64,000 nucleotides of DNA from Lepidodermella squamata (Eukaryota; Animalia; Gastrotricha). A model generated the notes under the pieces. The model was not told where the DNA came from and did not search any database. It worked only from the letters and a program-made list of their open reading frames with translations. The DNA lies in contig JBLDXI010000025.1 in assembly GCA_047495785.1 (NCBI GenBank), positions 372,001 through 436,000 of the forward strand. Reading direction: 5' to 3'. Below, in pieces: positions 11,436-48,260 of this stretch (positions within the stretch are counted from its first letter, which is position 1; each line of letters begins with the position of its first letter). The position numbers and the translations under genes are program-made.

Positions 11436-13194
11436 ATGCATTTTGTCACTGTTTTACTCTTGCAGTTCGCGGCCTCTTCCCTGGCTTGCCAACCTTCAAT
11501 CCAGGCTGCAGCTAAGGCCGAAGCCACCTGCCCAACAGGATTCACGTGTCAAGCTACGACTACGACTACAACGACGCTTTCTCCGCGCAGCATTTGCAAC
11601 ACGTCGAACAACGTCTGCAATCCGCTCTCCGTTGAGTACTGCCCAAAAGCGATAGCCGACGGTTTCACTGATGGTAGCAAATCGTGCACTACAGTTGCTA
11701 ACATTTGTTTCGGCTCAAACTTCTGCCTGGCAAAATCTGCGGAATATTGCCCGAAGGCAGTGCCAGACGGTATTACAGAATCGACCAAATCCTGCCAGTT
11801 GACGTCAGGTATCTGCGGCGGGGACAACTTCTGCCTCAAGAAAACAACGGATTACTGCCCAACAGCTGGCGGCGTTGCTGATTCGACTAAGGCCTGCGTT
11901 TTGAAGTCAACCATCTGCCCTGCGACGAGTCAGTGCCAGGACAAGGCAACTGATTACTGTGTAGATTCAGCGAAAGCGTGTCAGTCGTCGGCCGCTACCT
12001 GTGTCGGTTCCAATTTGTGCCTATCCAAGACGGCGGAGTACTGCCCGAAGGCCGATGGCACTGTTGACACGGGCAAGGCCTGCAAACAGACGACGGCAGA
12101 TTATTGCCAAACGAGTGGCTCAACCGATGCGAACAAGTTTTGTCAGGTGAAAAGCTCCGACTATTGTCAAACTGCTGGCGCAGCTGATGTCCAGAAGTTC
12201 TGCCAAGTGAAAACTACCGACTATTGCCAGTCTGCCGGCGTTGCTGATGCTCAAAAGTTCTGTCAGGCGAAAGGCACAGACTACTGTCAGACCGGTGGTG
12301 TTGCGGATGCAGCCAAGTTCTGCCAGCTGAGAACTGCCGATTACTGCCAAACAGCTGGCATGGCCTGTAAGCTCACAAATACCGATTACTGCCAGTCGGG
12401 TGGTGCGGCGGATTCGAACAAATTCTGCCAGGCTAAAGCTACCGACTATTGCCAAAGTGGTGGCTCTGTTGATGGCCAAAAGTTCTGTCAGACGAAAACA
12501 GTCGACTACTGTCAATCCTCCGGTACTACGGATGCTAACAAGTTCTGTCAAACGAAATCCGTCGATTACTGTCAAACTGGCGGTACAATAGATGCGAGCA
12601 AATCATGCCAAGTTGCGCCTACTACAAAGGTTAGCCCTCGAAAAAGAGACATGACAATCGTTTGTTTAACCGCTCTGATTCATCATTTAGCATCAAACAG
12701 GCATTTTCAACGTGAACTCAGACTCACTCAAGCTTGAATCCGGCATATGCTCAACGACAGGAAGTGTAGCCCCTTTTACAGACTTGCTGAAATCGGTAAG
12801 CTCCATAGTTGGTAATGGAAAATCTTGAAATTTCCGATCGTTTCAGACTGGCCCAGCGGGGCAATACAACAGCTTTGACGCGTGCTGCCAGAGCTTGGTG
12901 ACTGATCCGGGCAACCCTACGATCAAGTACATGACTCTCGTTAAAAACGGCAAAGGCATCACGATATGTTCTTACGGCAGCATCTACAGCATTACGCTTT
13001 CCGGGTCCGGGACTCAGATGTGCCACGATGCGCCCTTCTTTGCACCTTCAGGTGCCACGGTTTTGAACTCTTACGATTCATTCATCGAATGCTGCTTGGC
13101 GATTAGTGCTTCGGCGGTTACATTGGCTCGGATCGGCATCTCCGACGGATATTCAATTCTAGCGACCCGGTGCTACTTTAATCTTGCATTTTAA
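11436..13194 (+). CDS. Secreted Cys-rich tandem-repeat protein, paralog P1 (~548 aa), unknown family
   Basis: Exons 11436-12629, 12691-12795 and 12847-13194. Signal peptide, CQPS..CPTGFTC, poly-Thr, several longer 4-Cys units, about 9 DYC-type units and a C-terminal DACC/ECC domain. Exon structure is shared with three paralogs. Confidence 0.85.
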
Positions 13195-13306
13195 GGCATC
13201 TCAAGAAGAAGGAAACATGTTAACCCACAAGAATTTTTACCAAACTTAATAGCGACGCGTGATAATGAAAGTGTCCTCTTTCCGACGATGCCGATCTGTA
13301 TGCTTA

Positions 13307-14111
13307 GGGTAAACCGCCCTAATTCTGCATAAAAAATGTCGTCCGACTTAGACGCGATCGTTCTCGGCCGCCTTGAGGTATTTTGAAATTTCCTTTTAGG
13401 GGTAGGTGGGTCCGACCCTCAATTGCGTAACCCCAAAAGGAGAAATTCGGGCGACGCACCGTTTGCGCGCAGCAGCTGTCGCACGCGAGTGAGCGCCGGT
13501 TATGCAGCATTAGGATCATTGTCGCAATTTTGCATAAAATTTTGATTTTCTGGCCAAAATTGCATACTCGTTCAATTTTAATATTTTTTTCTCGGCCTTC
13601 TCATGAATTGGGTAAAATTTCATGCTGAATACGCTGGTCACATCAGATTTCATGTTGTTCTAATTTTTATTGTGGATTTTGAAGTCGCAAGAATAGCTTG
13701 CGAGCTTCGCCATAAAAATGGCGAATCCTCTGCTGTCCGAATCCACAATAAAAATTAGAACAACATGAAATCTGATGTGACCAGCGTATTCAGCATGAAA
13801 TTTTACCCAATTCATGAGAAGGCCGAGAAAAAAATATTAAAATTGAACGAGTATGCAATTTTGGCCAGAAAATCAAAATTTTATGCAAAATTGCGACAAT
13901 GATCCTAATGCTGCATAACCGGCGCTCACTCGCGTGCGACAGCTGCTGCGCGCAAACGGTGCGTCGCCCGAATTTCTCCTTTTGGGGTTACGCAATTGAG
14001 GGTCGGACCCACCTACCCCTAAAAGGAAATTTCAAAATACCTCAAGGCGGCCGAGAACGATCGCGTCAAAGTCGGACGACATTTTTTATGCAGAATTAGG
14101 GCGGTTTACCC
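13307..14111. mobile_element. Foldback MITE, 805 bp, with 372-bp near-perfect arms
   Basis: Arms 13307-13678 and 13740-14111 (one mismatch seen) with a 61-bp spacer. Termini gggtaaaccgcc/ggcggtttaccc, flanked by TA on both sides. Confidence 0.9.
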
Positions 14112-14213
14112 TACAATATACAAACTGAATTTTCTCCGTGATGCGAACATCTACAGCGTAACTGTTAAAATAAATGAAGTGCGAAGAATTTTCGACCAAT
14201 TTCCTTCTTTGTT

Positions 14214-14250
14214 ACAAATTGTGACGTTTCGTCGAAACGTCACAATTTGT
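14214..14250. repeat. 37-bp palindrome (18-bp arms, 1-nt centre) within a larger imperfect inverted repeat (14179-14266)
   Basis: acaaattgtgacgtttcg-t-cgaaacgtcacaatttgt. Confidence 0.8.
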
Positions 14251-14612: not shown

Positions 14613-14669
14613 CATGAGACGTTGCTAGGACGCCGAAGCTTGAATACTAGCTACTAGCTACGTCTCATG
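14613..14669. mobile_element. 57-bp remnant/excision footprint of the CATGAGACG-TIR element family
   Basis: 8-bp TSD agtaccag (14605-14612 and 14670-14677). Contains 33 bp of the left end, an 8-bp filler and 16 bp of the right end of the element at 37999-39035. Confidence 0.88.
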
Positions 14670-15572: not shown

Positions 15573-15632
15573 CACCCTAAATTCAACTCATTGAAAGCAG
15601 TCACATTTTTAACAACGCGACATTCGAATACG

Positions 15633-17020
15633 ATGAGCATTGCTATCCGTTGTTTAGTCAACCTCGCTTTAATCGCGAGCAGCGTATTGGCGCTGAGTAC
15701 GGAGAAACGGCGCACGATTTGCCGCTACCAGCCCGAAGTCGGCGAGTGCGATGAAGAAATCACCCGTTACTACTTCGACGTTAATACGGCTCAGTGCGAG
15801 AAATTTTCATACGGCGTAAGTTAAATATCAACTAAGTTTTAAGTATTACCTCCATTTTTCTCCTTCATTTTCCTTTATTTTCGATTAATTTCTTGTTAAT
15901 TTCGATTTCTTTTAGCTTCTGAATAACTGGAAGAAAATTCAAACTTCGAATATTCATTTTAAATTTATTATTAAATTCTGAAAATTTCAAATCGTCAATG
16001 GTTTTTTCTTCACTTTCTCCCCATTTGAAATGAAAATGTTAGACCGCTTGATTATTTTTTTTTAATTCTTAAAATTTAAAATGAATCGATATTTGAATGT
16101 GATTGCAATTTTCAATTTAGGGCTGCGATGGCAATCGAAATAACTTCAAGACGGAAAAGGCCTGCAAGCGCTTCTGCGGTTCGTTAATCAAGCCAACCGA
16201 GGCGCCGCCCGTCGACAAGGAACTGATTTGCAAGATGGAGTTCGAAACCGGCGAGTGCCGCGCCGACTTTGAACGCTGGTACTACGACTCGGCGTCGGAA
16301 AATTGCAAAACATTCAGCTACGGAGTAAGTAATATAATATAATATGATATAATATACAGATTTCATTTCACCTAATATTTTTCAAGTAATCAAATCTCAA
16401 AAATTACAAATTTTATATAAAATAAAAACAATATTTAAAATTTGAAATAAAATTTAAAAATCTGAAAAATAGTTTTTGAATAAATTTGTGAGAAATTTCA
16501 AAAATTTGGGAGTAAAGGCTGCTTTTTAATGTTCGAAAAACACGTTTTGTCCAAGGATACCGCACTCGTTACGGTACAAATTTTAAAATTTAATTGTTCA
16601 ATGTTAAGTTTTTGGAAAATTCAAAATTTTTACAAAAATCGAAATTCTTTATATATGAATTCAAAATATCTGCTTTCATTAATTATTGAAAATTAGCTAG
16701 CATTTTTTCTAGTCAAATTTGATAACCTTTCATTTTCCCCTACGGAACAGGGCTGTTTTGGCAATGCGAATAATTTTGAAACGAAGGAAGCTTGCGAGTT
16801 GTTCTGCGGCGACCAAGACCGTGCGCCGAGGTTCCCTGACAGCCAGGCTATGCCCGAGACGACCACCTTTGACCCGTACGCGCTTGAAGCCGCCGAACTG
16901 AACGAAATTCTCGAAGGCTGGTCGAATATGACGAGCACTACAACGGCGAAGGCCGATGGTGAAACTACAACCCTAGCTGCCAAGATCAACCATCGACGTG
17001 AAGCTGATTTCTCGTTTTGA
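15633..17020 (+). CDS. Secreted two-domain Kunitz/BPTI protease-inhibitor-like protein K1 (~218 aa)
   Basis: Exons 15633-15815, 16121-16324 and 16751-17020. Domain 1: CRYQPEVGECDEEITRYYF..C.KFSYG|GCDGNRNNFKTEKACKRFC. Domain 2: CKMEFETGECRADFERWYY..YG|GCFGNANNFETKEACELFC. Confidence 0.92.
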
Positions 17021-20111: not shown

Positions 20112-22979
20112 CTAAGTCACAAAGACAGGGAGCGGGCCCGACGACAGGCGGTCATGGAGGACGACTACGGGTGACTTCATCGTCGTCGGCGGACGTAAGC
20201 GGACGCTTTCGATTTGCTCGCGAAGTGGCAGGACATATCTGCAAGCATTCTCTGCGTAGCGGGCTTGAACCTGGCAGAAAAACTCTGAAAGGCTAGGCAG
20301 GCGACAGCGCCGCTCGAGTTCGGTGATACGAACACGGTCAGCGAGGCGTACGTTAAGCATGGCGCGCAGGCACTTATTCTGCAGGACGTCGAGGCGGCGC
20401 AACTGATGCTTGGCAGCGGACGAAAAGGCGACGCAGCCGAAGGAAGCGATCGAGCGGACGAGGGCGAGGTAGCTGGCACGACGCCAGCGGAAGGAGAGTC
20501 CAGGGCGCCGAACGATTGTGTGGTACCAAGAAAGATTTTGCCCGCAGCGGCTCAGAATACGGTCCAAGTGGGGCTTCCACGAGAGCTTGGCGTCAAAGTG
20601 AATGCCTAAGACGCGCAACACTTCGACCTGAGGGATAGCAGAGCCATTGAGCGATAAATGCAAGACTGGTGGCTGGCGCCCGAAAGCGAGCGCTTCACTT
20701 TTAGAGGCGTTGAACTGTTGGCGCCAAAGCCGGGCCCACGAAGACACTCGGTCGACTTCCGCTTGTACCCGGGACTCAGCCTCCAGAAACGACACACCGG
20801 TACCGAGGACGGTCAAATCGTCAGCGTAGGCGTCAAGGACGCTACCAGGAGCGCTAGAGGCACCCAGGAGATCCGCGGTGAATAAGATGTAGAGCAGAGG
20901 CGACAGCGGTGAGCCCTGTGGCACTCCGCAATTAACCACAACGGAGCGACTAAGGAAACCGGCCACGCGGGCCTGCAGTTTGCGGTCGCGCAGAAAATCT
21001 GTGAGCCAGCCGATGAGGTTCCGCGGCAGAGGCGGTGGACGAGGCCGGCGTGCCATACGGAGTCGTAAGCCGCCTTCACATCAAGACCCACAACGACCAA
21101 CTTGAGTTTGTCAGCACGGCACTGGTACGCCCGATGAGCGATTTGGACGGGAATGTCGACAGCGGAGTGGTGCTCGCGGAACCCATACTGATTGTCAGGC
21201 AGAAGGTGTCTATCCTCTAAGAAACGACTCATCCAGCGCGCAACGATCGCCTCCAATATCTTACCATCAGAAGGCAATAGCGAAATCGGGCGTTGAGAGC
21301 TAACGGCGTCAGACGGCTTACCCGGCTTGGGAACAGCGACAACAATCGGGCAGGGCGAATTGGCTACCGAGACACATATTGTAGAGGCGCCGAAGGTGAG
21401 CCTGCAACGGAACGCCACCCCACTTGTAATAGACATTACCGACGCCGTCGATCCCTGGAGCCTTGAACGGTTGCAGACGGTCGATCTCTTGAGCAAGCAT
21501 GCGTTGGCTTACACTGAAGTCGTCAGGGCCTGGCAGATGAATCGTAGCCTTGCTTTGAAGGTCAGGATCGGTGGCCATCAGGGTCTCAAGCTCGAGCCAA
21601 CGCTTGCGCAGGGCGTCGTCGGCGGCCGGGTCGCAGTAGGGCGTCATCGGCGAAGTGAAGTGGGTAAGTAACTCGTCAGCAAGCGAAGCGGACGGTGCCA
21701 GAACAGTTCCATCGTCCAGTTTCATGTGCCCACTGGAGCGCCGCGGCTGATGTCGGTCGAGCCGCCGGAGCCGGACCCACGCCTCGCGATACCGAAGTTG
21801 TCCTGAAAGAGCCTCAACCATACGCAGATTCGCAACGTCGCGGCGGAACTCGTGCTGTTGCTTAGCTTCTCGAAACTCGCCGTCCAGTCGCTTGATCTCT
21901 ACTGCCAACTGGGGATCACAATGAGGGCCAATCGCGCGCTCAAGAACACGCTTCTGCTTCAGGATCAAGCGCATACCGGCAGACATGGAAATCTTCCTCA
22001 GTTCACTGCGGTCACATAGGGGTACATGAAGGCGACGCGCCTCGACGATAGCGGCATTGATGGCACGGCGGTACGCAAGCAGCCGGTCCAGAGGGTCGCC
22101 AACCTGCGGAAGAGGAATAGCAGGCAGGAGGTCCCACAGCGTCCGTTGAAAGCCTCTACGATCGGCTCGAGAGAGATCAAACCGCGGGGCGGGGTCAGGA
22201 GGAGGCAGCAAGCGACGAGCTCCGATCACAGGTATTTCGAGGCAGAGCGAGATACTGAAGTGGTCGCTACTGAGGCGGTCACCCACGGTAACTCCCCCGC
22301 TGAGAAATTGCAAAGCGGCGTCATTGACCACCCAAACATCCAGGGTCGAGAGAGAGCCAGTGCGGAGATCGATATGAGTCGGGGCGGACTTTAAGACGGT
22401 GAGACCGAGCCGGGCCACCATGTGATGTAGGTGATAGCCATGCGGATTCCAATGGTCAGCTTCACTCCACAGAGGAGACTTGGCGTTCAAATCGCCGCCG
22501 AAAACACAGGGCGTGCGGGACGTGTTTGCCTCTTCAAACTCCTGCTCAAGAAACCGCAAATCCAAGTCAGAGGACGGCGGGCAATATCCGGTGACCAATC
22601 GAATCACAGCAGAACGAGGGTCGGGGATGACATCAATACGCAGCCACTCACTGCGCTTCCTGCCAGACAGCGGCATCTTACGTTCACGAACGACAGTGAC
22701 GCCTTCACGGACTAAGAAAGCAGAGCCGCCACAGGAGCCACGGTACAACAGATCGTCCGGGGCTTGCTCCCTGTCACATCTAAACACGGCATAGCGATGG
22801 AAAAAGACAGAGGAGAGGGGGAAGAAATAAGTCTCTGAGAGAAAAACAAATAGCGCATCAACATCTTCAGCCAAGTAACTAACTTCAACAGGCTTTCCGT
22901 TAGCACCTTGGGGATTCCACTGCATCATTACCACGAGATCAGTTGTCGTCGTCGTAGCGATAGCGGTCACGGTCGACAC
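20112..22979 (-). pseudogene. LINE ORF2 (APE endonuclease-reverse transcriptase), broken by two frameshifts
   Basis: QWNPQG, LSET, GDLNAK, LDV, SSDH (APE); KAPGIDG, RPISLL, QYGFR, LDVKAAYDSVWH, GVPQGSPLSP, YADD, LGIHFD (RT). Spread over three frames, with shifts near 21350 and 21035. Confidence 0.9.
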
Positions 22980-24462
22980 TCATTGACTGGTTGTTGCTGC
23001 TAGAGCGCAGGTCGTAGACCTCATCCGCCAGATCAGCCACGGACGACTCGAACTTCTCACGCCAGCCATCCTGTTTGGCGCGATCGGCTGCCACTGCATC
23101 CGAGAGGTGATGGAGCTGCAGCTGGATTTTTTGAAGAAGAGACGATATGCCGGCAACGGCCACACTAAGCTGAGCAGCCGAGTGCTGCCCTGAGACAGGC
23201 GCCGATGGGTGAGCAGGCGGCGGTGGCGGCGGCGTCGGTGCAGCAGTGCGAGCATAGCTGCGCCCGGGCGTCACAGGAGACGGCGGGCCTCGGCCGTGGT
23301 GAACACTGGCTGCCGCGGCGATCTTCTCACTCTTGGCACGGGCGTGTCGGGACGCGACTTCGGCCGACTGCGCAGCTTTGAAAGCAGGGCAGCCGCGCCA
23401 GGTACTGAAATGTCTCGGGGAGCCGCCTTCAGGGCAGTTGCAACAAAACGCTTGTTCGGGGGTAGCGCCGCAGCCCTCTGTGAGGTGCGCTTTGCCGCAG
23501 CGGCCACACGTGACGGAGAAGGCAGGGGGGCAGTCGATAGCGACGTGGCCATAACGACTACATTTGCGACACTTAGCGGGCAGCACGGGTGGCCGCATGG
23601 GGCGTACCTTTACGCGCCGGTTCAGCCACTGCATCCCATTGAGGCGGGCATCCTCATACGCCTCCTTCGTCTTGAATACGATGACACGAGTGGGTGGGCG
23701 GTGGGGGTCCTTCGCCGGCAGGTCGCGAACCTCTTCCACATAATCAAGGGGCAGATAGGCACGGATATCGGCAGCCGAATAGCAACCCGAGAGCCGAGAG
23801 GTCAAAACGCTGCGATTGTCCTTGTCAACCGCAGGAGGGAGCGGGCGACTAGGATCCGGTTCACTAGGACGGTGAACCCGATAGGCGCTGCCCTTGAAGG
23901 CGCCAGGGGGGAGTTCCTTCTTCAGCAATCGATCCGCGCCAGCAGGCGTAGAGCAGATGATCCGGAGGCCGCCGCTCCGCATGTCGACGGCAGAGTGATA
24001 TTCGAGCCAGGGTGCCACTCGCACAAGCTCGGGCTCAAGCTCGCATCGGCGCATGTTGGTGATGTTATCGATAATAACGACACGCTTACTGACGGGGTTA
24101 GCCGTGGCCGAGGCCGGGCGTGAGGCGAGCAGCGGTCGTGCAGAAGCCGGACCCGGCGGGGAAGCGGGCGGCGACGTTGCAGGAACCGGCGAAACGGTAG
24201 ACGACACAGGTAGGACCGGGAAGTCCGCCGTGGCATCCATCTTGTCGTGGGAGGAGGAGGGCGACGCGTTCGTGCTGCGGTTCTGCGAGAGCAGCGCCTG
24301 CACTTCGGCGATCGCATCGGCTGAAAGGCCGTTCACATTGAGCTTCTTCGGCAGCCTCGTGGAAGGCGGGGTTGGTACCGCCTTGTGCTTTTTCTTCGTA
24401 ACGCCGCCATCAGGCGGGCGACGCCGGCGGCGAGTAGATGCCGCAGATCCGGAGTCAGCCAT
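22939..24462 (-). CDS. LINE ORF1 nucleic-acid-binding (gag-like) protein, 507 aa
   Basis: Three zinc knuckles (CRKCSRYGHVAIDC, CGRCGKAHLTEGC, CCNC..H..WRGCP), an upstream RRM-like region and a C-terminal coiled-coil-like segment. Open frame. Confidence 0.85.
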   Translation of the reverse strand: MADSGSAASTRRRRRPPDGGVTKKKHKAVPTPPSTRLPKKLNVNGLSADAIAEVQALLSQNRSTNASPSSSHDKMDATADFPVLPVSSTVSPVPATSPPASPPGPASARPLLASRPASATANPVSKRVVIIDNITNMRRCELEPELVRVAPWLEYHSAVDMRSGGLRIICSTPAGADRLLKKELPPGAFKGSAYRVHRPSEPDPSRPLPPAVDKDNRSVLTSRLSGCYSAADIRAYLPLDYVEEVRDLPAKDPHRPPTRVIVFKTKEAYEDARLNGMQWLNRRVKVRPMRPPVLPAKCRKCSRYGHVAIDCPPAFSVTCGRCGKAHLTEGCGATPEQAFCCNCPEGGSPRHFSTWRGCPAFKAAQSAEVASRHARAKSEKIAAAASVHHGRGPPSPVTPGRSYARTAAPTPPPPPPAHPSAPVSGQHSAAQLSVAVAGISSLLQKIQLQLHHLSDAVAADRAKQDGWREKFESSVADLADEVYDLRSSSNNQSMSVDRDRYRYDDDN

Positions 24463-26127: not shown

Positions 26128-26577
26128 CATCAAAGGGGAACTTTTAATAAAGCCGCAACCTCGTTCAACGTTTACGTTGACATATGCTCTACGAACTGTA
26201 TCAGAATTAACAGACTTGCTGTTTCAAACAGGCCCGGCGGGGCAATACAGCAACTTTGAAGCCTGCTGCCAGAGCTTGGTGTCCGATCCGTCTGCTGTCA
26301 ATCCTGTGATCAAGTACACTCTCAAAGACCCTCTCAAAAAGCGGCAAAGGCATTACGATATGTTCTCACACCCGCATCCACAGCGTTATGAGTGGCACGT
26401 CTACCACGTTATGAGTGCCACGACGTGCCCAGCTTCATACCTTCAGGTTACGCTGTTTTGTTCCCTCACGATTCGTTCGTAGAATGCTGCCAGGCTATTG
26501 CTGCTACGAAGATGGCAATGGTGTCGCTCGGCTTCTCTGGCGGCACTGAAGTCAAGGTGACCCGGTGCCAGAATTAA
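26128..26577 (+). pseudogene. Remnant of exons 2-3 of a P1-like Cys-repeat gene
   Basis: tttcag|HQRGTFN.., TGPAGQYSNFEACCQSLVSDP, GKGITICS, CHDVPSFIPSG and DSFVECC in shifting frames. Exon 1 is absent and intron 2 is mostly deleted. Confidence 0.85.
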
Positions 26578-27795
26578 CGTAATTCATTTTAACAAAGCGG
26601 AAGCATTTCATACCGCTCAGTATCATTGAACTCATCCCGGTGAAAGGGCAGAAAAATGAAAAATCCTTAATTTTTTCTTTTGAAAGGACAGCTTTCAGCA
26701 GTTTTCTATTAATACTATAGCTGCAATAACAATAGATCCCGTTTGCCTTTGGTGATACTTTGATGATAGTAAACCGCTTTTGCGTAATTCACTGTCAACT
26801 TGAGTGTTGACTCGCGTGTTGAATAAAAATCGCAGTCAGCTTAACCCTTCCACGGCGGAAAGGAATGTTGGCTTTGCAAATTCATAATTCCGTTCATTTT
26901 TCCTAATCTTAGTGAGGAACCTATAAGGCACAGCACAATATGACTATTTGCAGCACAGCGGCGCAAATGGTAGCACAAATTAAATCCACATTGTAGCACA
27001 GTTTTCGCATTTTGTATCACACCTTAATTTTACTAAAATTCAACAAAAAATCGGTTATTTATGAATTTTTGCAATTACAACTGCCATGATTGGTGCCGAG
27101 CGAAGTCTGGCTACGACCGCCGCTGCTATTGCAGCTCACAGCCATGGCGGTTAAAGGCTGAACCTGTGGTGCCACGCGGCAAGCGTTGGTTCTGCTTCGC
27201 AGTCGGAACGCGTGTTCCGCTACATTGGCGTGCGAGGAACCCAGTTGCCATCTCGGTATTGTCGGCATTGCCGATGTAGGAAAACATTCAGTGGCTGCCC
27301 AATTTTTATCAGCCATCGATCACCGTTCATGGCATTGACTGAGCCACCCCATTCAACGGTGAGAAGATATAAAACTGGTGGTGTTTCGGGGCCATGCTTC
27401 GAGTTAGAAGTTATTGTGATTCGAAGTCGGCATTCGGAATCAAATTCGGTGAAATATCGCTTGCTACGCGCGCCAATGTGCTACATATCGTCGCAGGTGT
27501 GCTGCCGAGCCTCATTTTGAGCCAGTGGAGCCAGTGAATCCACAATTATCTGATTGGTCGGTTGCATTGAAGGCTGTGATTGGTTGGTTCAAAAAGCACG
27601 CGACGCGCACCATTCAATCTGTCTGCGATTGCGTTTCCCATGATATGGAAGCTTGGATTCCACTAAGAAGGCAGGTTCGTGGCACAGTGGACGAACCGTC
27701 TGATCAAGTATCAGAAGATTCCAGCTTCGCCTCTTGGCAGGTTCGTTATACCAGTAAGGAAACCCTTAAATGCAGCAGTACACTGCTCAGTGTCA

Positions 27796-27868
27796 GCCCG
27801 GTTAGCTCAGTCGGTGGAGCATGGGACTGTTAATCCCAGGATCGTGGGTTCGAGCCCCACAATGTACG
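27796..27868 (+). pseudogene. tRNA pseudogene or tRNA-derived SINE head: tRNA-Lys(CTT)-type body with GTT (Asn) anticodon
   Basis: gcccggttagctcagtcggtggagcatgggactGTTaatcccaggatcgtgggttcgagccccac. D, anticodon and T arms pair; the acceptor stem has 3 mismatches. Confidence 0.8.
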
Positions 27869-29410
27869 GTTGTACATTGTACCTTGGGGGTTATTTTCGA
27901 AGCCATCTTTATCGATGGAATTAACTTTAGCCCATAATGTCTACCTTATCGCCAAGAAATAAAGTCAACTTTATGACCGGTATGCTTTTTGAACATAAAG
28001 TCAACTTTACTTCACTAAAGTCGGCTTTATCTAGCGAACGTAAATGTACTACCTGCCTCGACCTAATCGCCTTGAAGTCGACTTTAACGGCCGATTTTTG
28101 TCCGAAATCGAGCGTTTTAACCTCAAAAACCCTTGTTTACCTAATTGTATAGGAATCATGGCAATAACAGAGTCTGGAAAAACCAGGTCACGGCTAACGA
28201 TGAGCGATTTGAAACTGGCGCTTAGCTTTTTGCGAGATGAAGCCAGCTTTATCGATAGATTTGATTTTATCATAAAGACAAATGAACAAATGAACAAGGC
28301 CTAAAACACGAGTTACCGACAGAGAAGATTAACTTTTTTTTCGACACATCAGGCAGTTTTCACAGGCAACGGCGATGTATTTTCTTGAGCGCTTCTAATA
28401 ACGTGTGTATGCCACTTAGGGCTATGTTTTAAGCCTATCCGCGACTCAACCGAGTTCAAGGTCATTGCAGGGTGGGTCGAAAATAGGGCCGTCACCGACG
28501 GAGAAAAATGTTTTTGCTGTTTTTCGCATTTTTTTTCCAACTAAATTTCCTAATCAGATTTGGGTTTAAAAGATTATTTATGAATTTTAAAACTTCCGCA
28601 CAGGTTCAAGGAATAAAAAAACATAAACAAAGTGACGAGTTTATTTCAAATTAGGCCAGGGAGGTACAAAAACTGCGTCACCGACGGAGGAGGCAAAATG
28701 TCACCGATAGAGGTTTTAAAAAGACATTTTCAAATTGATTTTTTTCGCCATATTTACTAGTAATGACCACATAACAACTCGAGAATCAATACATAGGAGT
28801 ATAAAGGTCTGCGCACATACTCGTATGAAAAAATGTGTATGTGATTTGTAATAAGTTTTTTGCCGGGGTCGTATGTGTTGGCGAAAAAAAATCGCATACA
28901 GACCCGTTCACAAACTGATTTCTTTTCTCCCTGTATGTGATTTTTTTCTGGCCGAAGAGGCCACTGAAAAAAATGACCAACTTCGATGGGGCTCGAACCC
29001 CGTCCGCCCGTTGAACAGGCCGGTGAATAGCAACTGCACTATGTTGCCATCATATTTGTGCAACGACTATAACTGCAAATGTCACGATATTTCGACGAAG
29101 CGTTCATTTAATTAAAACTTGTAAATGCTTCGAATTATTACAAAGTAAGCCCTTACAATTCTTTAAAAATTTTTTTATTTAATGACACATCGATAGGTAA
29201 TTTACCTTACTCGATACGCTCATTATCTTTTAACCCCATATTGCGTCTCAAACCGAACATCAGCGTTTTATTCGATAGGGTACAAATTCCTGTTTTATTT
29301 TATCACTCACATTTATCATATAAATTCAAAATTCACGTTTGCGAGGATTAAAGTATTTCGTATTTATCAAAATATTATCAGGTAGCTTTTTCGTTATCGT
29401 TCATTCGATC

Positions 29411-30674
29411 TTAAACCCAGTTGATGCGACCTTCATTGTGGAAAAAGTCGAAAAGAAGCGTTCTCATCTGGTGGCCATCAAGTAAATCTGGAGCGGGGTC
29501 TGGCCGGTGAAAGTCGACAGGTTGGTTATCGATTGCCAAGTCAGGATACGTCTTCGACAAATTATAACAGCAAACCATTGAATATGTCAAGTCAGCCGCA
29601 ACTTTTGGCGCTAAATGAATCGGTCCAGATAGCCTCGGACATTCCTGGACTAGTCCTCCAAAAGCATTTTCGACGGAATGACGTCCACGCGAGATTCTTG
29701 CGTTAAACATGTCTTTACCTTCGGTGTCAAAAATATCCGAATCCGAATTTCTGTTCGAAAAGGGCGTCATGATCTGTTCGTCGTTCTCAAAGGCATTGTC
29801 GGCAACAATATAAAAATTGCAAAGATTGCCGTTACCTTCAGGTAACGGAAATTGCCAATCTGGTAAACGATTTTTAACACTTCTCGCCAGCCCTGAGACC
29901 CGCCACACACAACCATCAGATAGCCGTCCTGGAGCCCCGATGGCAACTGCTCGAAACTTTCTGTCAGCATCAACAACAGCCATAAGTACAATGCTGCAAT
30001 AGCCCTGTAAAAAAATCAGATTAAATAGTGTCATGTATCACAGTGTCCCATGTTACCTACGGTAATAGCTATGGTCTTACCTTATAATTGAAAAAGATCG
30101 AGCCACTACCAGGTGGCTTTACAATTGCCACGTGTTTGCCGTCTACAGCAGCACAACAGCCGGGTAGTTGCCACAGTTCTCGAAAGCGGGCTTCCATAGA
30201 TACTAGGTCTTTTGTAGTTAGAGGCGGCATAACAATTGGCGCCAAGAAGCGATGTATTAACGGAGCCATGTCTCGGATTAACATTGAAGCTGTAGAATGC
30301 CCGATTTTCCAACTATTAGCCATTTTCTTCAAACTATCGCCGCCTCCCATGTATGAAAGGCAGAACGCAAGTCGAAAATCGCTGCTCAAAGGGCGACGGC
30401 CTAGCCTGAATCTTTTGAAATGGGGCTTTATTAAATTGTGCAGCCATTCGAACTGATCAATGTTCATTCGCACCTCGTCACGAAACGTTTTGGGGTCTTC
30501 ATGGCGAGCACGCAGTAACGCTGTGGTGAAGTGACCACTCTGATCGCGAGACCTGAGGTACGGCCTTATGCCGTAGCGGCGCGGGGACCCGCTCCTGAAG
30601 CTATTTCCAACCACAAAGGTCGCAGCAACAGTGATTGTGACCAGTCTGATGGTTTCAAGGTCAATGTTATTCAT
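29411..30674 (-). CDS. Harbinger (HARBI1-like) DDE transposase (~395 aa)
   Basis: Exons 30674-30081 and 30004-29411 (76-nt intron). Motifs VRMNIDQFEWL, AVDGKH, FFNYK|GYCSIVLMAVVDA, SDG, ADNAF, FNARISRGRHSVENAFG. Confidence 0.92.
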
Positions 30675-30821
30675 TGTTGAGCATCTACAACGCCAGAAAA
30701 ATATCGAAAAAAGTATAAGTTAACACTGACAGAGCATCTTTATTTGCAAAACTACGGCTTCTTTCCCTAGCAAATGACTATAATCACATCACACAGCCAT
30801 ACGCGTAGTATCTTTGGTGAA

Positions 30822-31680
30822 CTACGCGCGCTTGGACTCCCGTATGCGCCTTCTCGCTCGCAGAATTGCCTCGTCCACTTCAATTTTAAGGTCAAAAGCA
30901 GTTTCCGGGTCAGCTTCCTTCAAAACGTCGTTCAAGTACTTGCAAATAGGGTCATAATCAATCGATGAAGATTCGGAAGTGGACGATCTATTTGAAACCA
31001 ATCCAGCCATGACACTCTGTGCTACCTTGGTAGTTTGCTCAATCCAGTCGTCACAACTATCAGCTTTCGCTTTCTTGGATTTGACGTCGATGCCCGCCCC
31101 GCGCGCTGGAGCCTTCGTAGAGTCTTGTTTCTTGGTAATTTGTTTCGATGTCGATGGGGCAAATTCTTTAAATTCATCGTCGTCGCCAAGATCTGCGTCG
31201 GATAGGTCCATCCACGATGCGTTGCTGTCGTTATCCATGTTGCCAATGTTGGCACTAATCAACCTAGGAACAAAAGCTCACAATATAGGCGTAAAAAGTG
31301 AATAAAACATATATATATATAAACATGTCTCGCTTTAGAACTTCATCAAGAAAGGATATGGCTTTCGCGTGTTTCCACTCCTTCCGCTTGGTTTGAACTT
31401 TAACTTCAATTCCTTCGTCGGAACCCTGGCCACTTTTTCCTTTCTTCTTTTCTGAAGCTTGCTGCCTTTGGAAGTGGTAATTTTTGAGACCAATCCACTT
31501 TTTTTTAGCGAAATCCCCGCTAGGTAAATTCAATTCATCGGCTATTTCCTGCCACGCCGAATCAACGACTCGCATATTAGCGTGTAATTGTTCTTTTGGA
31601 TCCCAAAGGAATTTTTTCTCGCCAACTAGATTTATCAGGGCTGCCTGAATGGTGTCCGATAATTTTTGATTTTTACTCAT
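30822..31680 (-). CDS. Harbinger MADF/Myb-SANT DNA-binding protein (~265 aa)
   Basis: Exons 31680-31325 and 31263-30822 (61-nt intron). LINLV..KKFLWD..AWQEIADEL..KKKWIGLK three-Trp pattern; helical C-terminus. Confidence 0.85.
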
Positions 31681-32402
31681 TTCTGTTTTGAAAAATTGAT
31701 CGTGCGTTAAAATTATGTCTACAAAATATATTAACATAAAATTCAATTATTCGGCTAGAAAATTGGACTTCAAGCTCAAGATTGGCAAAAGATAACAATA
31801 AAATAAAATAAAATTAGGGAGAAGTATAAGTATTTTTATTTATCAGGTGAGGGTATAGGTATGAACATCGGAATAAATTGATCATAAGTTTGAATTAAAT
31901 CAAGACAACTAAGCTTTAAATGATTGAGCTATTATATTTGTTGCTCAGTGATTTAATACTATTAGTGGAAATCGTTGTCCTCGACCTCGATAAATATCGA
32001 CCTTCGCCCGAGAGAAAAATTATTACCCCGACTGTCGCATCAAATATCGTATGAGTGATAACGCACTGACCTTTTTATTACTACTCATTCATTTTTTTTA
32101 ACAAGGCCGCGTTAATTTGACCATATATTTCAGTGGCAGCTTTGTCAAATCGATGTGTTTGTCAAAGTTCAGCGCAGCTATCCGGGTTCGTCTCCAAGCG
32201 CCGCCATCCCTTTTTTCAGTGGCCTCTTCGGCCAGAAAAAAAAATCACATACAAGGAGAAAAGAAATCAGTTTGTGAACGGGGGCTGTATGCTTTTTGCT
32301 GTATGTGTATGTGTTTACTCGCCTGCGTATGAGAAAAAAAAAGAAACGAGTTTGTGGGAAGGCCTTAAGGAGGGGAAAAAAGCAGTGACAGCAAAATAAT
32401 TG

Positions 32403-36376: not shown

Positions 36377-37059
36377 CCAAATGTTTGAGTGCTGGCACCC
36401 TTAAACGCGTGGCAGCTCACACGAACACGGCGTAGTACGTTTACGTGAACGCAACATTTAACATTGCACTTTACTCACGTAAAAGGCACCGGTCGGCGTT
36501 CGTCAGATGCGAATTCACGTCGAACGCAGCCGGGCTCATCGTTCTATCATTCATCTCTATACCTATTTAACAACCGAGAAACGAGAAACGGCGAGTTGTT
36601 GGTGGAGCGCATATTAGCAAATTATCATGCTTGAATAATGAAGACCATCTCCACACACTCAAGTCAAATTACAATACTACAAAGATGAGAAAAATTGCCG
36701 TATGCATGGTGGAAGGCAAAAAATCGAAGTTAAACGTAATTATAATTACCTTTCCACGAAGAAGAGAGCGGCATAATAACTGTATCGTATTATAAGAATC
36801 ATAGCAGCTTTGGCTGGCAATTTGTATTTTGAACCCATTAAGTTGGAAACTATTTGTTGAACCACAATTCATTTTGAAGCTATGCATCCTGTCTTCGCCT
36901 TGTTGGTGCTTTCCGCGACCTGCTGCCTGGCCTGCCAACCTTCAGTCCCGGATGCTGGTAAAGCAACCCCCAGCTGCCCAACAGGATTCACATGCCAGGC
37001 CACTGCAACTACTACTACGACTACTACTACAACGGCGATCGTTCCACGCAGCATTTGCA
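36377..37059 (+). repeat. 683-bp near-identical duplication of the upstream region and 5' CDS of P2/P3 (other copy 40602-41284)
   Basis: Constant offset 4225 with only scattered substitutions. Confidence 0.93.
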
Positions 37060-39792
37060 ACTTGGTGAACAACATCTGCAATCCATTATCTAATGAATAC
37101 TGTCCAAAAGCGATAGCCGACGGCATCACCGACCCAACTAAAACATGCACTCCACCTGCTACCCTTTGCTTCGGCTCGAACTTCTGCTTGGCAAAAACCA
37201 AAGACTACTGCCAGACGAGTGGCGCGGCTGACGCCCAAAAATTCTGTCAAGTGAAAACTATCGACTATTGCCAAACGGGTGGCGCGAGTGATGCACAGAA
37301 ATTCTGCATAGTGAAAACCACGGATTATTGCCAGACGAGTGGCAGCGCGGATGCAACCAAGATGTGCCAGTCGAAAAACACCGACTATTGCCAAACGAGT
37401 GGCAGCGCTGACGCTCAAAAGTTCTGCCAAGTGAAAACAACAGACTACTGCCAAACAAGTGGCACGGCTGATTCCCAGAAATCCTGTATAGTGAAAACTA
37501 CCGACTATTGCCAAACCGGCGGCACTGCTGATACCCAGAAGTTTTGTCAGGCAAAAAGCTCGGATTACTGTCAGACCGGTGGCGTGTTGGATTCTTCCAA
37601 ATTCTGCCAGTCGAAATCTAGCGATTACTGCCAAACGTCTGGCAAAGCGTGTAGGGTCACTGCTGCCGATTACTGTCAGACGGGCGGCTCTGCGGATGCT
37701 ACGAAAGCCTGCATGTCGAAAACCACCGATTACTGTCAAACTAGTGGCAGCGCTGATTCGAACAAGTTCTGCCAAGTGAAAAAAACCGACTATTGCCAGT
37801 CAAGTGGCAGCGCGGATTCTACCAAATTCTGCCAGGCTAAGGCCAGCGATTACTGTCAATCAGGCGGCACTGCAGATGCTACCAAGTTCTGCCAGTCCAA
37901 AACAGGCGATTACTGTCAAAATGGTGGCACTGCGGATTCTAGCAAATTCTGCCTATCAAAATCCACAGATTACTGCCAAACTGGTGGCTCCGCTAGTGCA
38001 TGAGACGTAGCTAGGACGCCGAAGCTTGAATCCCGCCATACAAAGTGACGTGTTGGCGTTATGCATGCTTGAATATTCTGAATAATTTGCCTTTTGTAAA
38101 AATTAAATTTTCAGGGTTTAATAAAAATAATTATTTTATTAATCCCTGAAATTTAAAAAATATTAAGTTGAAAATTCAAAAGGTTTAAAAATCGTAGGCG
38201 TCGATGGTTACGAAGCTAGAATCAGGTTCCAAGTAGGAACTAAGATCGAGAGAACTCAAACCATGTGATGTAGAGCTCTGCGAACTACTTTCTTAAGACA
38301 AAAAGCAATTCAAACAAGCCGTATGCTGATATTTTCCATTGAGTTGTTTTTCTTTTTCACGTCGCGATTATGCTGCAGCTGTTGCGTAATGACGTGAGAT
38401 AATTTCATATGTCTTAAACAATCGAGCAGGAAATTTTTTTCAGTCGAAATTTTCCAAGTTTTCGGCTAGAGGACTTTCACCGGGAACTCAATTGCTCATT
38501 TGCGGTCCGATAAATTACTGGCAGTTCAAACTGGAATGAAAAAATGGGCTGGATGTGATCAGCATCTCAATTTTCAGATTTTTCAGCTCTCAGTTTTTCT
38601 CAGTTATCCTATTAATTTTTAATTTTTTAATTTTTAATTTTTGATCAATTTTTTCAATTATTCTCTAGTTCAAGTTAGATTCAAATTCAAGGAAATTCAA
38701 GTAAATTCAAATTCAAGCTTCTTCATTACATCTATTGATTTTAGTTTAACATGCATTATTAACAGATAATTTTGAAAATTAATGGCTCGAAGCAGGTGTT
38801 GATATAATTTTTTACAATGTGTTGCAATGCAATTAATTATCGATTGATCGCGCCCGAATCAAGGGCACTTTTAACCTTATTTTGGACAACATAAAATAAG
38901 GATTAAAAGAGCGCGAAAATTTAATGAGGTGATTCATCTCATTATTTTCAAAACGTGACCTTTGACCCTAATTATTTCTGACAACACTTTTTTCTCGTAA
39001 ACAACCCAGCTGCGGCGTCCTAGCTACGTCTCATGCGCTAGTGCTAATAAGTTCTGCCTGGATAAAACTACCGACTACTGCCAAACTAGTGGCACTTCCG
39101 ATGTTAACAAGTTCTGCCAAGTCAAGACAGCCGATTACTGCCCGACCGGCGGAGCCGCGGATGCCAATAAATTCTGTCAAAAGAAAACTGCGGATTATTG
39201 TCAAACTCTTGGCGTAGCAGATACGACCAAGTCATGCCAACCTTTACCTGTCATAACAGTTTGTAATCGCGAAACTGTGTTTTCCCGTAATTCTTCAATG
39301 TTTTTTGCTTTATCCAGCACCAAACAGGAATATTTGCACAAAAATCGACCTCGTTCAGGGCTGACGTTGGCTTTTGCTCCACAACAGGTGTTGTGAATGA
39401 ATATTCTGCCGTGCTGAAATCAGTAAGATCGGTGTTAACGAAAAGAAAATTGAACTTTCGCCTCTGTTTAGTCAGGAACAGTCGGAGAGTTCCTGAGTTT
39501 CGACGCGTGCTGTCAGAGTTTGGTAACTGATCCGACTTCCCCGGCGATCAAATACTTCACATTTATCAAAAGCAACAAGGCCATGGTGATATGTTCTTAC
39601 GGCAGTGTCTATCTCACCACAATTTATTCGAACAAGAGGTGTTATGGAGCGCCTCTTTATGCCCCGTCAGATCACACAATTCTCGCTACTTACGACTCGT
39701 TCGATGAATGTTGCAAAGCTATTTCTGCTACGACATACGCAAGGGACCTCGTCAGCGGCTCTTCAATTGTCATGTACAAGTGCTTTGAATAG
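36882..39792 (+). pseudogene. Cys-repeat paralog P2 (~585 aa if repaired), disrupted by a transposon in exon 1
   Basis: Exon 1 is 36882-37998 + 39044-39258; exon 2 is 39318-39422; exon 3 is 39472-39792. 17 DYC units. Removing the insertion plus one TSD restores the frame (GSAS|ANKFC). Confidence 0.88.
37999..39035. mobile_element. Non-autonomous DNA transposon, 1037 bp, 8-bp TSD, P-element-like termini (hAT not excluded)
   Basis: 23-bp perfect TIR catgagacgtagctaggacgccg. TSD cgctagtg (37991-37998 and 39036-39043). AT-rich non-coding interior. Confidence 0.92.
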
Positions 39793-41106: not shown

Positions 41107-42996
41107 ATGCATCGTGTCTTCGCCTTGTTGGTGCTTTCCGCGACCTGCTGCCTGGCCTGCCAACCTTCAGTCCCGGATGCAAGTAAAGCAACCCCCAGCT
41201 GCCCAAATGGATTCACATGCCAGGCCACTGCAACTACTACTACGACTACTACTACAACGGCGATCGTTCCACGCAGCATTTGCAGCACGCCGAACACCTT
41301 CTGCAATGCTTTATCCGTTGAATACTGCCCGAAAGCGGTAGCCGATGGCTACACCGATATGAATAAAGTTTGCGCGCCGACTTCTAACATTTGCGTCAGC
41401 CCAAACTTCTGCCTGGCAAAAACCACAGACTACTGCCAGACAAGCGGTACTTCTGACGCCCAAAAATTCTGTCAATTGAAAACTACCGACTATTGCCAAA
41501 CCAGTGGCGCGAGTGATGCTCAGAAGTTCTGCCAAGTAAAAAACACGGATTATTGTCAGACGAGTGGCACAGCGGATGTTATTAAGTTCTGCAAGGCTAA
41601 ACACACCGACTATTGCCAAACGAGCGGCAGCGCTGACGCTCAAAAGTTCTGCCAAGTGAAAACGACAGACTACTGCCAAACAAGTGGCACGGCTGATGCC
41701 CAAAAAATCTGTCAATTGAAAACTAGCGACTACTGCCAAACCGGTGGCACTGCTGATGCTACCAAATTCTGTCTGACGAAAAGCACGGACTACTGCCAAA
41801 CTAGTGGTTCCGCGGATTCTACCAAGGTCTGTATGTCGAGAACTTCCGACTACTGCCAAACTAGTGGCACAGCAGATGCTACAAAGTCGTGTCAGTCCAC
41901 GAGTGTCGATGTTTGCCTGACGAGCGGCTCCCCTGATTCCACCAAGTTCTGCCAGACCAAGACAAGTGATTACTGCCAGTCGGGCGGTGCTGCTGACGTT
42001 ACCAAAATCTGTATAGCGAAAAGCACCGACTATTGCCAAACTGGCGGCTCCGCGGATACTGGCAAAGTGTGTATGGCTAAATCCAGCGATTACTGCCAAA
42101 GTAGTGGCTCTGCGGATAGTACCAAAGCCTGTATGCCGAAGAATACCGATTACTGTCCAACCAGTGGCTCTGCGGATTTAAACAAGTTTTGCCAGGCTAA
42201 ATGCAGCGATTACTGTCAGACGAGCGGCTCTGCGGATAGCAACAAGTTTTGCCAATTGAAAACCAGCGACTACTGCCAAACTAGTGGCGCCACGGATTCT
42301 AGCAAGTTCTGCCAGACCAATACAGTCGAATACTGCCAAACCTCCGGTACTGCTGATAGTAGCAAGTTCTGCCTAACGAAGACCACTGACTATTGTCAAG
42401 CTAGTGGCTCACCAGATGCGACCAAATCGTGCCAACCTCTACCAGTCAGAATGGTCAGTTCGATGATTTTCCCACCCTTTTGTAATCTTCTCTTTTCTTC
42501 GGTTTTTTCAGCACCAAACAGGGGTATTCGCAAAAAAAGATACCTCGTTCAAGGCTGATGTTGGCTTCTGCTCCACGACTGGAAGCGTGGCGGATTATTC
42601 TGCCCTGCTGAAATCTGTAAGGTCGCTGTTAACGGAGTATTACTCTGATTTTCGCCTCTGTTTTAGTCCGGAACAGTTGGAGAATTCAACGGGTTTGACG
42701 CGTGCTGTAAGAGCTTGGTGACTGATGCGTCCATCCCGACGATCAAGTACTACACGTTTATCAGAAACAACAGGGGCTTGATGATATGTTCTTACGGCGG
42801 CGTCTACGCCACTACAACTGGTGCGAGTAACATATGTTACGGAGCGCCTCTTTATGCCCCGTCAGATCACACCACTGGTCCAATCTACGATTCCTACGAT
42901 GAATGCTGCAATGCTATTTTTGCCACGACATTCACAAAGCAACTCGTCAGCACGGCGGGCGGCAATGCGATTCTCGTTTACAAGTGCACTACTTGA
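41107..42996 (+). CDS. Secreted Cys-rich tandem-repeat protein, paralog P3 (~593 aa)
   Basis: Exons 41107-42453, 42512-42616 and 42667-42996. Signal peptide. 17 uninterrupted 20-aa (60-bp) units. C-terminal DACC/DECC domain. Confidence 0.88.
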
Positions 42997-45605: not shown

Positions 45606-48260
45606 ATGCATTGTGTCATCGCCTTGTTCCTGCTTTTCGCGGCCTGTTGCTTCGCATGCCAACCGTCGGTTCTGGATGCAGGTAAAGCAACCCCCAGCTG
45701 CCCAACAGGATTCACGTGCCAGGCTTATTCGACTACGACTACAACGACGATTGCTCCGCGCAATTGCAACCTGTCCAACAACGTCTGCAATCCGCTATCC
45801 GTTGAATACTGCCCAAAAGCGTTAGCCGACGGCTACACAGATGGAAATAAAGCTTGCACTCCGCTCGCTTACATTTGCTTCGGCTCGAACTTCTGCCTGG
45901 CAAAAACAACGGACTACTGCCAAACTGCTGGCGTTTCTGATGTCCAGAAATTCTGTCAAGTGAAAACCATCGACTATTGCCAAACTGTTGGCTCATCTGA
46001 TGCCCAAAAGTTCTGCCAGGTAAAAACCACGGATTATTGCCAGACAAGTGGCGCGGCTGATGCCCAAAAGTTCTGTCAAGTGAAAACTATCGACTACTGC
46101 CAAACGAGTGGCACTTCTGATGTTCAAAAGTTCTGCCAAGTGAAAACGACAGACTACTGCCAGACAAGTGGCGCCGCGGATGTTAACAAGTTCTGCCAGG
46201 TTAAGGCTAGCGATTACTGCCAAACAAGTGGCAGCGCTGATGCCCAGAAATTTTGTCAAGTGAAAACGATCGACTATTGTCAAACTGGCGGTTTTTCTGA
46301 TGCCCAGAAATTCTGCCAGGTGAAAACCACTGATTATTGCCAGTCGAGTGGCGCCGTGGATGTTAACAAGTTTTGCCAGGTGAAAAACACAGACTACTGC
46401 CAAACGAGTGGCTCTGCTGATTCCCAGAAGTTCTGCCAAGTAAAAACTACCGACTACTGCCAGACTGCCGGTTTTTCTGACTCGCAAAAGTTCTGTCAAG
46501 TGAAAAGCATCGACTACTGTCAGACCAGTGGCGTGGCAGATTCGAACAAGTTCTGCCAGTTGAAAACTGCCGATTACTGCCAAACAGCTGGCATGGCCTG
46601 CATGTCCCTAACTACTGACTATTGCCAGTCGAGTGGTTCAGCGGATACGGGAAAGTTCTGTGTCTTGAAAAATGCCGATTACTGTCAAACTGGAGGCGCA
46701 GCTGATGCGCAAAAGTTCTGCCAGATTAAAACAGTCGATTACTGCCAAACGGCTGGCAGTGTTGACGCTCAAAAGTTTTGTCAAGTCAAAACGATCGACT
46801 ATTGCCAGAATGGAGGCACCGCTGATACTAACAAATTTTGCCAGGATAAAACTGCTGACTATTGCCAAAGTGGTGGCTCTGCTGATGGCCAAAAGTTCTG
46901 CCAGGCCAAAACAGCCGAGTACTGCCCAACCTCCGGTGCTGCGGATGCTACCAAATTCTGTCAAAAGAAAACTGCGGATTATTGCCAAACTGGTGGCTTC
47001 GCAGATGCGACCAAAATATGTCAACCGTTACCTGTCAGAACGGTTAGTCATCGTAAAATGAGCTATCCATCTACCGTTAATGCCGAAATACTAACCCGGG
47101 CTCATGCATTTTTGAACCTCCGAAAATTGGCCAAAAATAGGCTTCTATTTGAGATAGGACTATACATCGATCAACATCCATTTTCACCCGAAAATCACCG
47201 AAACCATCTAAATTATAGTCATCTTCGAGACACTCGACTGTCGACTGACGTCGATTTTCATTGCTCTTAAGTAGCGAAACTGTAAAGGCTGACTATAAGT
47301 TATTTGGCTGATAAAGGTAGGAAAATTTCCTTCAGGAACACTTGGGAATTTCAAAAAAATAATTCTATATTCTGAATCAGTGTAAAAAGTTAGGGCGAGG
47401 AGTATATTTTGGCACTGTTATCTTCGAAAACGTGGAAGAAATGGGGGAAAGAAAAAGCACATTCACAAAGTTTGCGCGCGCCGACTCGATTTATGATTTT
47501 AAATGCCCCATTTCTTGCCCGTTTTGGAAGATAACAGTGCGCAAATTTATTCCCCACCCTAACTATTTACGCTGATTCAGAATATCGGATTATTTTCACG
47601 AAATTCCTAAGCGTTCAGGAGTTTTATATTCCGGCACATCAAGACCTAGGCCTTTATTTGAAATAGGACTATGCATGTAACATCTCAGGTAGGCCTCTGA
47701 ACGAGGCGGGCTCTTAAACGAGTGGGGGTTGGTATTTAGATATTTACGGTATTTTTAATCTTTACTGTTTTCAGCACCAAACGGGAACCTTCGCGCAGAA
47801 TCCGTTCACGTTCTCTGCTGACGTTGGATTTTGCTCCACCACTGGAAGTGTGAGTGAGTATACCGACCTGCTAACATCGGTAAGCTGGCTGCTAACGGAA
47901 AATTGCTTAAATTCTAGCCTGTTTTAGTCAGGACCAGGACCAGCCGACCAATTCAACAGCTTCGACGCGTGCTGTAAGAGCTTGGTTACTAATCCATCCG
48001 TCCCAACGATCAAGTACTACACGTTTATCAGAAACAACAGGGGCTTGATGATATGTTCTTACGGCGGCGTCTACCGCATTACAGATGGTGACGTCACCGC
48101 ATGTTACGGAGCGCCTCTTTACGGTGGAGGTCTCACAATTGTTGCCACTTTCGACTCGTTCGATGAATGTTGCACTGCTATTGGTGCTACGTTATCTATT
48201 AAGCAGGACATCCTCAGCTCTGTCGGCGGCAATGTAATTAAGGTTTACATATGCTCTTGA
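45606..48260 (+). CDS. Secreted Cys-rich tandem-repeat protein, paralog P4 (~624 aa)
   Basis: Exons 45606-47042, 47775-47879 and 47928-48260. 19 units including one 15-aa unit. Intron 1 is enlarged by a transposon. Confidence 0.87.
47074..47749. mobile_element. TA-flanked degenerate TIR element in P4 intron 1, with an internal inverted repeat (~47336-47616)
   Basis: ta|ccgttaatgccgaaatactaaccc ... ggggttggtatttagatatttacgg|ta. Removal leaves a ~54-nt intron, similar in size to the paralogs. Confidence 0.7.

Follow-up and report, generated by a model that had tools for sequence, protein, structure and literature searches.

A four-gene cluster in the gastrotrich Lepidodermella squamata predicts a family of secreted proteins with a new 20-residue cysteine repeat

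Among eukaryotes, beta-solenoids are rarer than among prokaryotes (PMC13734099), and in the literature that we searched the disulfide-braced ones from animals are antifreeze proteins. Those of insects are secreted repeat proteins with two cysteines per coil and a coil of 12 residues in Tenebrio molitor or 10 in midges, and the ice-binding faces of antifreeze solenoids are flat and poor in charge (PMC13080227). The curlin repeat of about 23 residues is marked by an N-x5-Q-x-G or Q-x10-Q kernel (PMC10192328), and bacterial fibrillar adhesins have an established architecture of stalk plus binding domain (PMC9210967). Here we describe four paralogous genes of Lepidodermella squamata, with starts at 11436, 36882, 41107 and 45606 on the + strand of a 64-kb window (the whole stretch of DNA analysed, 64,000 nucleotides). 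Judged from their sequences, they form a real protein family, under selection and not recognised before, whose cysteine repeat is new, and the predicted model places it most likely among disulfide-braced beta-solenoids.

All four predicted proteins have the same domain order: signal peptide, three-cysteine module, poly-Thr stretch, cysteine-repeat rod and a head of ~145 residues with eight cysteines. Each gene has three coding exons, of which exon 1 carries the signal peptide, the motifs CQPS and CPxGFTC, poly-Thr and the entire repeat, while exon 2 (35 codons) and exon 3 (about 110 codons) encode the head. The eight introns are all GT-AG and in phase 0, seven of them 48–61 nt long and one 732 nt. 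Gene 1 comprises exon 1 at 11436–12629, with a rod of 38 cysteines made up of irregular N-terminal coils and 8 regular units, exon 2 at 12691–12795 (the first 35 residues of the head) and exon 3 at 12847–13194 (the remaining head up to the stop). Exon 1 of gene 2 is split by an insertion into a 5' part at 36882–37998, which ends at the insertion, and a 3' part at 39044–39258 with the final repeat units; its head exons lie at 39318–39422 and 39472–39792. Gene 3 has 17 regular units and 40 rod cysteines plus one private extra cysteine in exon 1 (41107–42453), followed by head exons at 42512–42616 and 42667–42996, and gene 4 has 18 regular units and 44 rod cysteines in exon 1 (45606–47042), followed by head exons at 47775–47879 and 47928–48260. 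Genes 1, 3 and 4 are intact. The spliced frames of genes 1–4 are open for 548, 585, 593 and 624 residues (gene 2 counted without the inserted element), and the predicted mass across the family is 55–65 kDa. Genes 2 and 3 have 831 bp in common at 94% across the promoter and 5' end, which we read as a recent duplication or conversion.

These gene models bear out the outline given in an earlier note on this DNA, which had described four genes with a common signal peptide, CQPS, CPxGFTC, poly-Thr, cysteine repeats and a two-exon domain, together with a remnant. A true remnant does lie at 26128–26577 (+) and consists of frameshifted head exons alone; an upstream repeat exon was looked for there and none was seen. 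The segment 39043–39792 is no second remnant; it belongs to gene 2 as its 3' part, severed by the inserted element. The 9–19 repeat copies counted previously need correction, as there are 8–18 regular units per gene and irregular longer or shorter coils make up the rest of each rod.

Genes 1–4 contain 8, 16, 17 and 18 regular 20-residue units (59 in total) and 14, 18, 18 and 20 D/E-Y/V-C motifs (70 in total). All 59 units have the same four residues C3, G7, K13 and C15, while 58 have D10, 58 have Y2 and 57 have D1, in agreement with the fixed D-Y-C, G, D, K and C noted before. Gln4 recurs in 55 of the 59, Phe14 and Gln16 in 46, and tyrosines are spaced near-regularly, 15–19 to a chain. The unit can be read as two related halves with swapped charges, D-x-x-K-F-C-Q and K-x-x-D-Y-C-Q, plus a Gly/Ser loop. 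A conserved Lys lies three residues from each Asp (Asp1 and Asp10), and charge is balanced in the unit (1.97 K+R versus 2.02 D+E) and in whole chains (net -4 to +4).

The regular units are under strong purifying selection as protein. Mean pairwise nucleotide identity between units is 0.74, 0.77 and 0.48 at codon positions 1, 2 and 3, respectively, and entropy at third positions is twice that at the first two. Among the 59 units the proportion of synonymous differences (pS) is 0.76, which is saturated, versus 0.23 for nonsynonymous differences (pN), a comparison of the dN/dS type (nonsynonymous to synonymous rate ratio) between units that supports the selection proposed in the earlier note. All 11 invariant nucleotide columns fall at codon position 1 or 2, every unit differs in DNA from every other, and the coding frame is free of stops over the repeats, where each of the other five frames has 2–30. 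The closest DNA neighbour of 41 of the 59 units sits in a different gene; most units are therefore older than the gene duplications.

In all four genes the cysteines are divided into three in the N-terminal module, an even number in the rod (38, 40, 40+1 and 44) and eight in the head. The conserved set is therefore odd, leaving one cysteine spare. Although regular units are so unequal in number, the rods of genes 1–4 hold 19, 20, 20 and 22 cysteine pairs, the balance in gene 1 coming from irregular coils, and this near-constant number suggests that rod length has been held in the four genes. At 4.8 Å per coil, 19–22 pairs give a predicted length of 9–10.5 nm.

A cysteine stands exactly 8 residues upstream of every one of the 70 D/E-Y/V-C motifs. 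The cysteine interval that spans the Gly/Ser loop varies from 6 to 15 residues, while the other is 8 (7 in irregular coils), and a short 15-residue unit is common to genes 1, 2 and 4. Such confinement of length changes to the Gly/Ser-loop interval is expected for a solenoid with one tolerant loop. Pairing of Cys3 with Cys15 within a unit closes the whole rod; pairing of Cys15 with Cys3 of the next unit has constant spacing and leaves the two terminal cysteines of the rod unpaired within it. We somewhat favour the within-unit pairing, and from the cysteine counts we infer a disulfide ladder.

Sequence searches and folding were run exon by exon. AlphaFold2, applied to exon 1 of gene 3 alone as a single sequence without an alignment, gave a model with a mean predicted local distance difference test score (pLDDT) of 63.8 and a predicted template modelling score (pTM) of 0.55, with the repeats at about 60–87 and residues 1–94 under 50. 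In this model the repeats form a parallel beta-solenoid, each unit contributing a 13-residue strand segment (Lys13 to Thr5 of the next unit) and a 7-residue Gly/Ser loop. Foldseek with the rod model gave no significant match. In structural alignments the top-ranked entries were parallel solenoids only (beta-helices and beta-rolls), at 3–12% identity, including CsgA (Z 22.8, root-mean-square deviation (rmsd) 8.5 Å, 300 residues aligned), a tailspike (Z 21.1, rmsd 4.2 Å), Vag8 (Z 18.6, rmsd 3.6 Å) and the bacterial antifreeze helix 3p4g (Z 16.9, rmsd 3.7 Å). These matches describe the shape of the model, not its correctness.

The family resembles the insect antifreeze solenoids as a secreted animal repeat with two cysteines per coil, and the Tyr beside Cys in its units recalls the Tyr-rich site of the midge protein. 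It differs from them in having a 20-residue coil, about 20 coils, four charges per coil, no TxT, a poly-Thr hinge and a globular head, and has no sequence similarity to them. The best shape match, CsgA of Pontibacter korlensis (R15.5, PDB 8C50), likewise has two related half-motifs per repeat and columns of Gln, but its identity to the family is 8%, and the family lacks N-x5-Q and Q-x10-Q, is Cys-rich, has ends that appear capped and uses eukaryotic secretion. Right-handed parallel beta-helices (phage tailspikes, pertactin/Vag8, polysaccharide lyases and Marinomonas 3P4G) superpose on the model with Z 16–21 and rmsd 3.4–4.7 Å; their coils are irregular and without repeated disulfides, and they are 3–8% identical to the family, whose repeats are too uniform for a catalytic site and have no RTX calcium motif. 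Fibrillar adhesins and periscope proteins share architecture only, namely a repetitive stalk and a distal divergent domain, whereas the proteins described here are animal proteins without a known stalk, adhesive or anchor domain, and binding is putative by analogy.

Motif searches of the four rods gave 0 matches to the Tenebrio 12-residue repeat (C-x5-C-x5-C), to the three published curlin patterns (PMC10192328; no Pfam curlin match either), to the RTX calcium motif GGxGxDxUx (the units being neutral, not net acidic) and to the 16-residue bacterial ice-nucleation repeat (GYGSTxTA). TxT occurs in a maximum of 4 of the 59 units at any position pair and 0–3 times per whole rod, consistent with the absence of a strict TxT motif remarked on in the earlier note.

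No relatives were found in Pfam, NCBIfam, PDB sequences, two large protein collections, the ESM Atlas (by features and by shape), metagenome contigs or prokaryotic genomes; searches of the protein collections with exon 1, the N-terminal part and the head alignment gave no matches. The family had been put forward as unrecognised, and these checks of repeat and C-terminal domain returned no true relative. As the searched collections are poor in small invertebrates, the blank shows the family to be an orphan in the data searched and does not mean that relatives are missing in nature. The sole outcome of Pfam searches with six exons was a repeat-summed match to a coronavirus helicase stalk model, biologically meaningless and without any single stretch that was significant. 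Sub-threshold Pfam matches to Lustrin and Toxin_7 (16 bits versus 27) were dismissed as cysteine-pattern noise, and the genes show no toxin signs. The likeness to the Lustrin cysteine-rich module PF14625 lies in the N-terminal CPxGFTC segment, a weak match (E 0.02; 15.6 and 13.7 bits versus a gathering score of 27) to the last third of the model alone. The single match of an all-protein HMMER search with exon 3, P0001, is cysteine-free with fibronectin-III-like repeats, aligned at 23% over eight summed stretches, and was set aside as compositional.

At the N terminus, the signal is hydrophobic (mean Kyte–Doolittle 1.8–3.0 over residues 3–15) and ends in Ala17, before CQPS, CPxGFTC and poly-Thr. 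No transmembrane segment was found past residue 25 in the four proteins (best 19-residue window 0.7–1.7). By these predicted features the proteins are exported, which supports the secretion claimed before. An invariant Pro-Arg between poly-Thr and rod in 4 of 4 genes (approximately 11598–11603, 37045–37050, 41270–41275 and 45765–45770) is a possible trypsin- or thrombin-type cleavage site. Secreted proteins palmitoylated by HHAT, such as Hedgehog and Spitz, have an N-terminal Cys and carry a basic residue among their first seven positions (PMC8061759). The predicted mature chains begin with Cys-Gln, which is tolerated, yet their first Lys is residue 10, so the chains fall outside the published rule and HHAT palmitoylation was rejected (PMC8061759).

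The heads are 48–67% identical between paralogues, with a dN/dS of 0.30–0.56, indicating purifying selection on a domain that is nevertheless diverging. A model of exon 3 only, from four sequences, gave a small alpha/beta domain (pLDDT 66.8). Fold searches with this model, which is without exon 2, found no match (best Z 3.5); with exon 2 missing from it, a new fold for the head is no more than a possibility. The head contains two helix-CC motifs that look alike, but alignment did not bear them out as an internal repeat.

By analogy with stalked adhesins, we tentatively read the family as lineage-specific secreted rod-plus-head proteins of the body surface or extracellular matrix, in which a stalk would present a binding head. 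The repeats would wind into a parallel beta-solenoid with one coil per unit and one disulfide closing each coil, and the Lys/Asp pairs would neutralise each other, so that no metal would be needed. About 20 coils would make a stiff rod of the length given above, capped by the irregular coils at its N end and by the globular head at its C end; because both ends would be capped, as the architecture suggests, curli-like end-to-end growth is not expected. Poly-Thr may serve as a hinge, probably O-glycosylated, and the spare cysteine, probably that of the N-terminal module, may bond one copy of the protein to another or to a partner in the matrix. The rod would thereby hold the divergent head at a fixed distance for a ligand (for example a glycan, a microbial surface or another matrix protein), like the stalk of a fibrillar adhesin. 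The neutral charge of the rod and its lack of TxT speak against a role as a surface for ice or mineral. A cysteine-stapled 20-residue coil without any ice-binding motif would broaden the animal roles of the fold and would supply a naturally regular, neutral and probably very stable rod for protein design. In the literature searched we found no description of cuticle, egg or adhesive proteins of Lepidodermella squamata, for which the family is a direct candidate.

Several points weigh against a stalk that presents a binding head. Neither sequence nor fold searches matched the head, so a binding role rests on analogy, and no anchor is recognisable, the spare cysteine being the sole candidate tether. 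Equal rod length may come from shared ancestry alone, and Tyr2, Gln4, Phe14 and Gln16 are conserved beyond the needs of a passive spacer, which points to a rod surface with its own job. The predicted solenoid comes from a single-sequence run without an alignment, and AlphaFold2 made beta-solenoids of 32 of 78 (41%) random perfect repeats (PMC11795689); because it folds many random repeats in this way, its solenoid is weak support. According to its authors, the bias mainly concerns near-perfect repeats (PMC11795689), unlike which the units here are moderately diverged, and the 59 natural units offer a clean test case for it. The same bias counts in favour of a rival structure, in which disulfide-closed beta-hairpins (Cys15 to the next Cys3, eight residues on) would be stacked or strung together by the Gly/Ser loops, as in granulin- or choline-binding-type repeats. 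The fixed spacing before all 70 motifs beside a variable other interval would suit such hairpins, as would the symmetry of K-F-C-Q-x / K-T-T / D-Y-C-Q-T around a three-residue turn; they would, however, strand the first and last rod cysteines where the alternative pairing closes all, and the best AlphaFold2 model matched parallel solenoids only. We consider hairpins unlikely, though worth keeping in view, and they are compatible with either function, presenting a head or working through the rod. The rod is very probably repetitive, disulfide-bonded and beta-rich, and we lean slightly towards a parallel solenoid. Of the disulfide-laddered solenoid in the earlier note, the solenoid thus recurs in a biased single-sequence prediction and the ladder in the cysteine counts.

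The close rival to the stalk-plus-binding-head reading is that the work is done by the rod itself, as a structural or adhesive block of cuticle, scale, eggshell or glue in which neighbouring rods would pack laterally through their Tyr/Phe/Gln ladders, spare-cysteine or tyrosine cross-links would join the chains and the head would be a cap or assembly domain. We regard this as possible but rather doubtful. It would explain the conservation of Tyr2 (58/59), Gln4 (55/59), Phe14 and Gln16 (46/59), the near-regular tyrosines and the odd number of conserved cysteines; the closest solved shape is that of a fibre subunit, CsgA, and the animal, as a gastrotrich, has scales and adhesive tubes (PMC11660948). 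The rod ends nevertheless look capped, whereas open ends allow curli to polymerise (PMC10192328), and curlin motifs are absent. More speculatively still, the proteins may form a new extracellular material of an animal, self-assembling through Tyr/Phe/Gln ladders into cuticle, eggshell or glue. Its 20-residue beta-solenoid would be metal-free, charge-paired and disulfide-stapled, with a fixed length of about 10 nm and a head of new fold; if so, the proteins would rank with the first molecular components identified for a gastrotrich structure of this kind.

Ice binding was among the earlier suggestions. A form of it in which an antifreeze or recrystallisation inhibitor with a midge-like Tyr ladder would guard a resting stage now looks improbable. 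Animal disulfide-braced beta-solenoids are best known as antifreeze proteins and the midge site is rich in tyrosine (PMC13080227), and the model resembles 3p4g, among many others; but the rods have no TxT array, carry four charged residues per coil and lack the Tenebrio, RTX and ice-nucleator motifs, and head and hinge would go unexplained. We give even less credence to the proposed calcium- or mineral-binding rod, in which a ladder of the near-invariant Asp1 and Asp10, the latter placed after the Gly-rich loop, would bind Ca2+ or mineral, since a conserved Lys accompanies each Asp, the unit and whole chains are near neutral and no RTX motif is present. That the repeats are decaying, unexpressed or an assembly artefact is the least probable explanation. 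Gene 2 is interrupted, one remnant exists and an RNA run containing the stretch was looked for and not found (one sequencing run of unknown kind contains 80% of the words of gene 3); against this stand three intact genes with canonical introns, saturated synonymous sites with amino acids held, and heads that differ by 33–52% between paralogues.

The insertion in gene 2 is a non-autonomous DNA element of 1,037 bp (37999–39035) with terminal inverted repeats and an 8-bp target duplication (37991–37998 and 39036–39043), the length of which suggests a hAT-like element. It interrupts the 13th regular unit, with a stop two codons into the element, and is recent, because the frame without it is open for 585 residues and the splice sites are intact. 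At 14613–14669 lies a 57-bp copy of the element that has lost its interior but kept the ends, flanked by an 8-bp target duplication of its own. Directly behind gene 1, an 809-bp palindrome (13305–14113, 95% perfect) is either a foldback element or an artefact produced by inversion during whole-genome amplification.

Other mobile elements in the window are a LINE-type (long interspersed nuclear element) retrotransposon at 20112–24462 (-), with an ORF1-like frame (ORF, open reading frame), endonuclease and reverse transcriptase in broken frames; a Harbinger-type transposon at 29411–31746 (-), whose DDE_Tnp_4 transposase adjoins a MADF/Myb gene; and, at 867–4117, a MULE (Mutator-like element) transposase ORF (1773–3137) flanked by 657-bp direct copies (867–1522 and 3461–4117) that are 99.8% identical. 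A tRNA-Asn-like sequence at 27795–27870, spotted by eye, is probably a pseudogene or short interspersed nuclear element (SINE), because ARAGORN gives no call. The cluster is flanked by several small secreted Kunitz genes (15636–17000 and 49932–53540) of 1–3 domains with an intron splitting each domain. A class C G-protein-coupled receptor gene and an S10 serine carboxypeptidase gene occupy 5488–9813 (-), and a long ankyrin-repeat exon lies at 61059–63956 (-). The window as a whole is animal DNA of 43.9% GC with short GT-AG introns.

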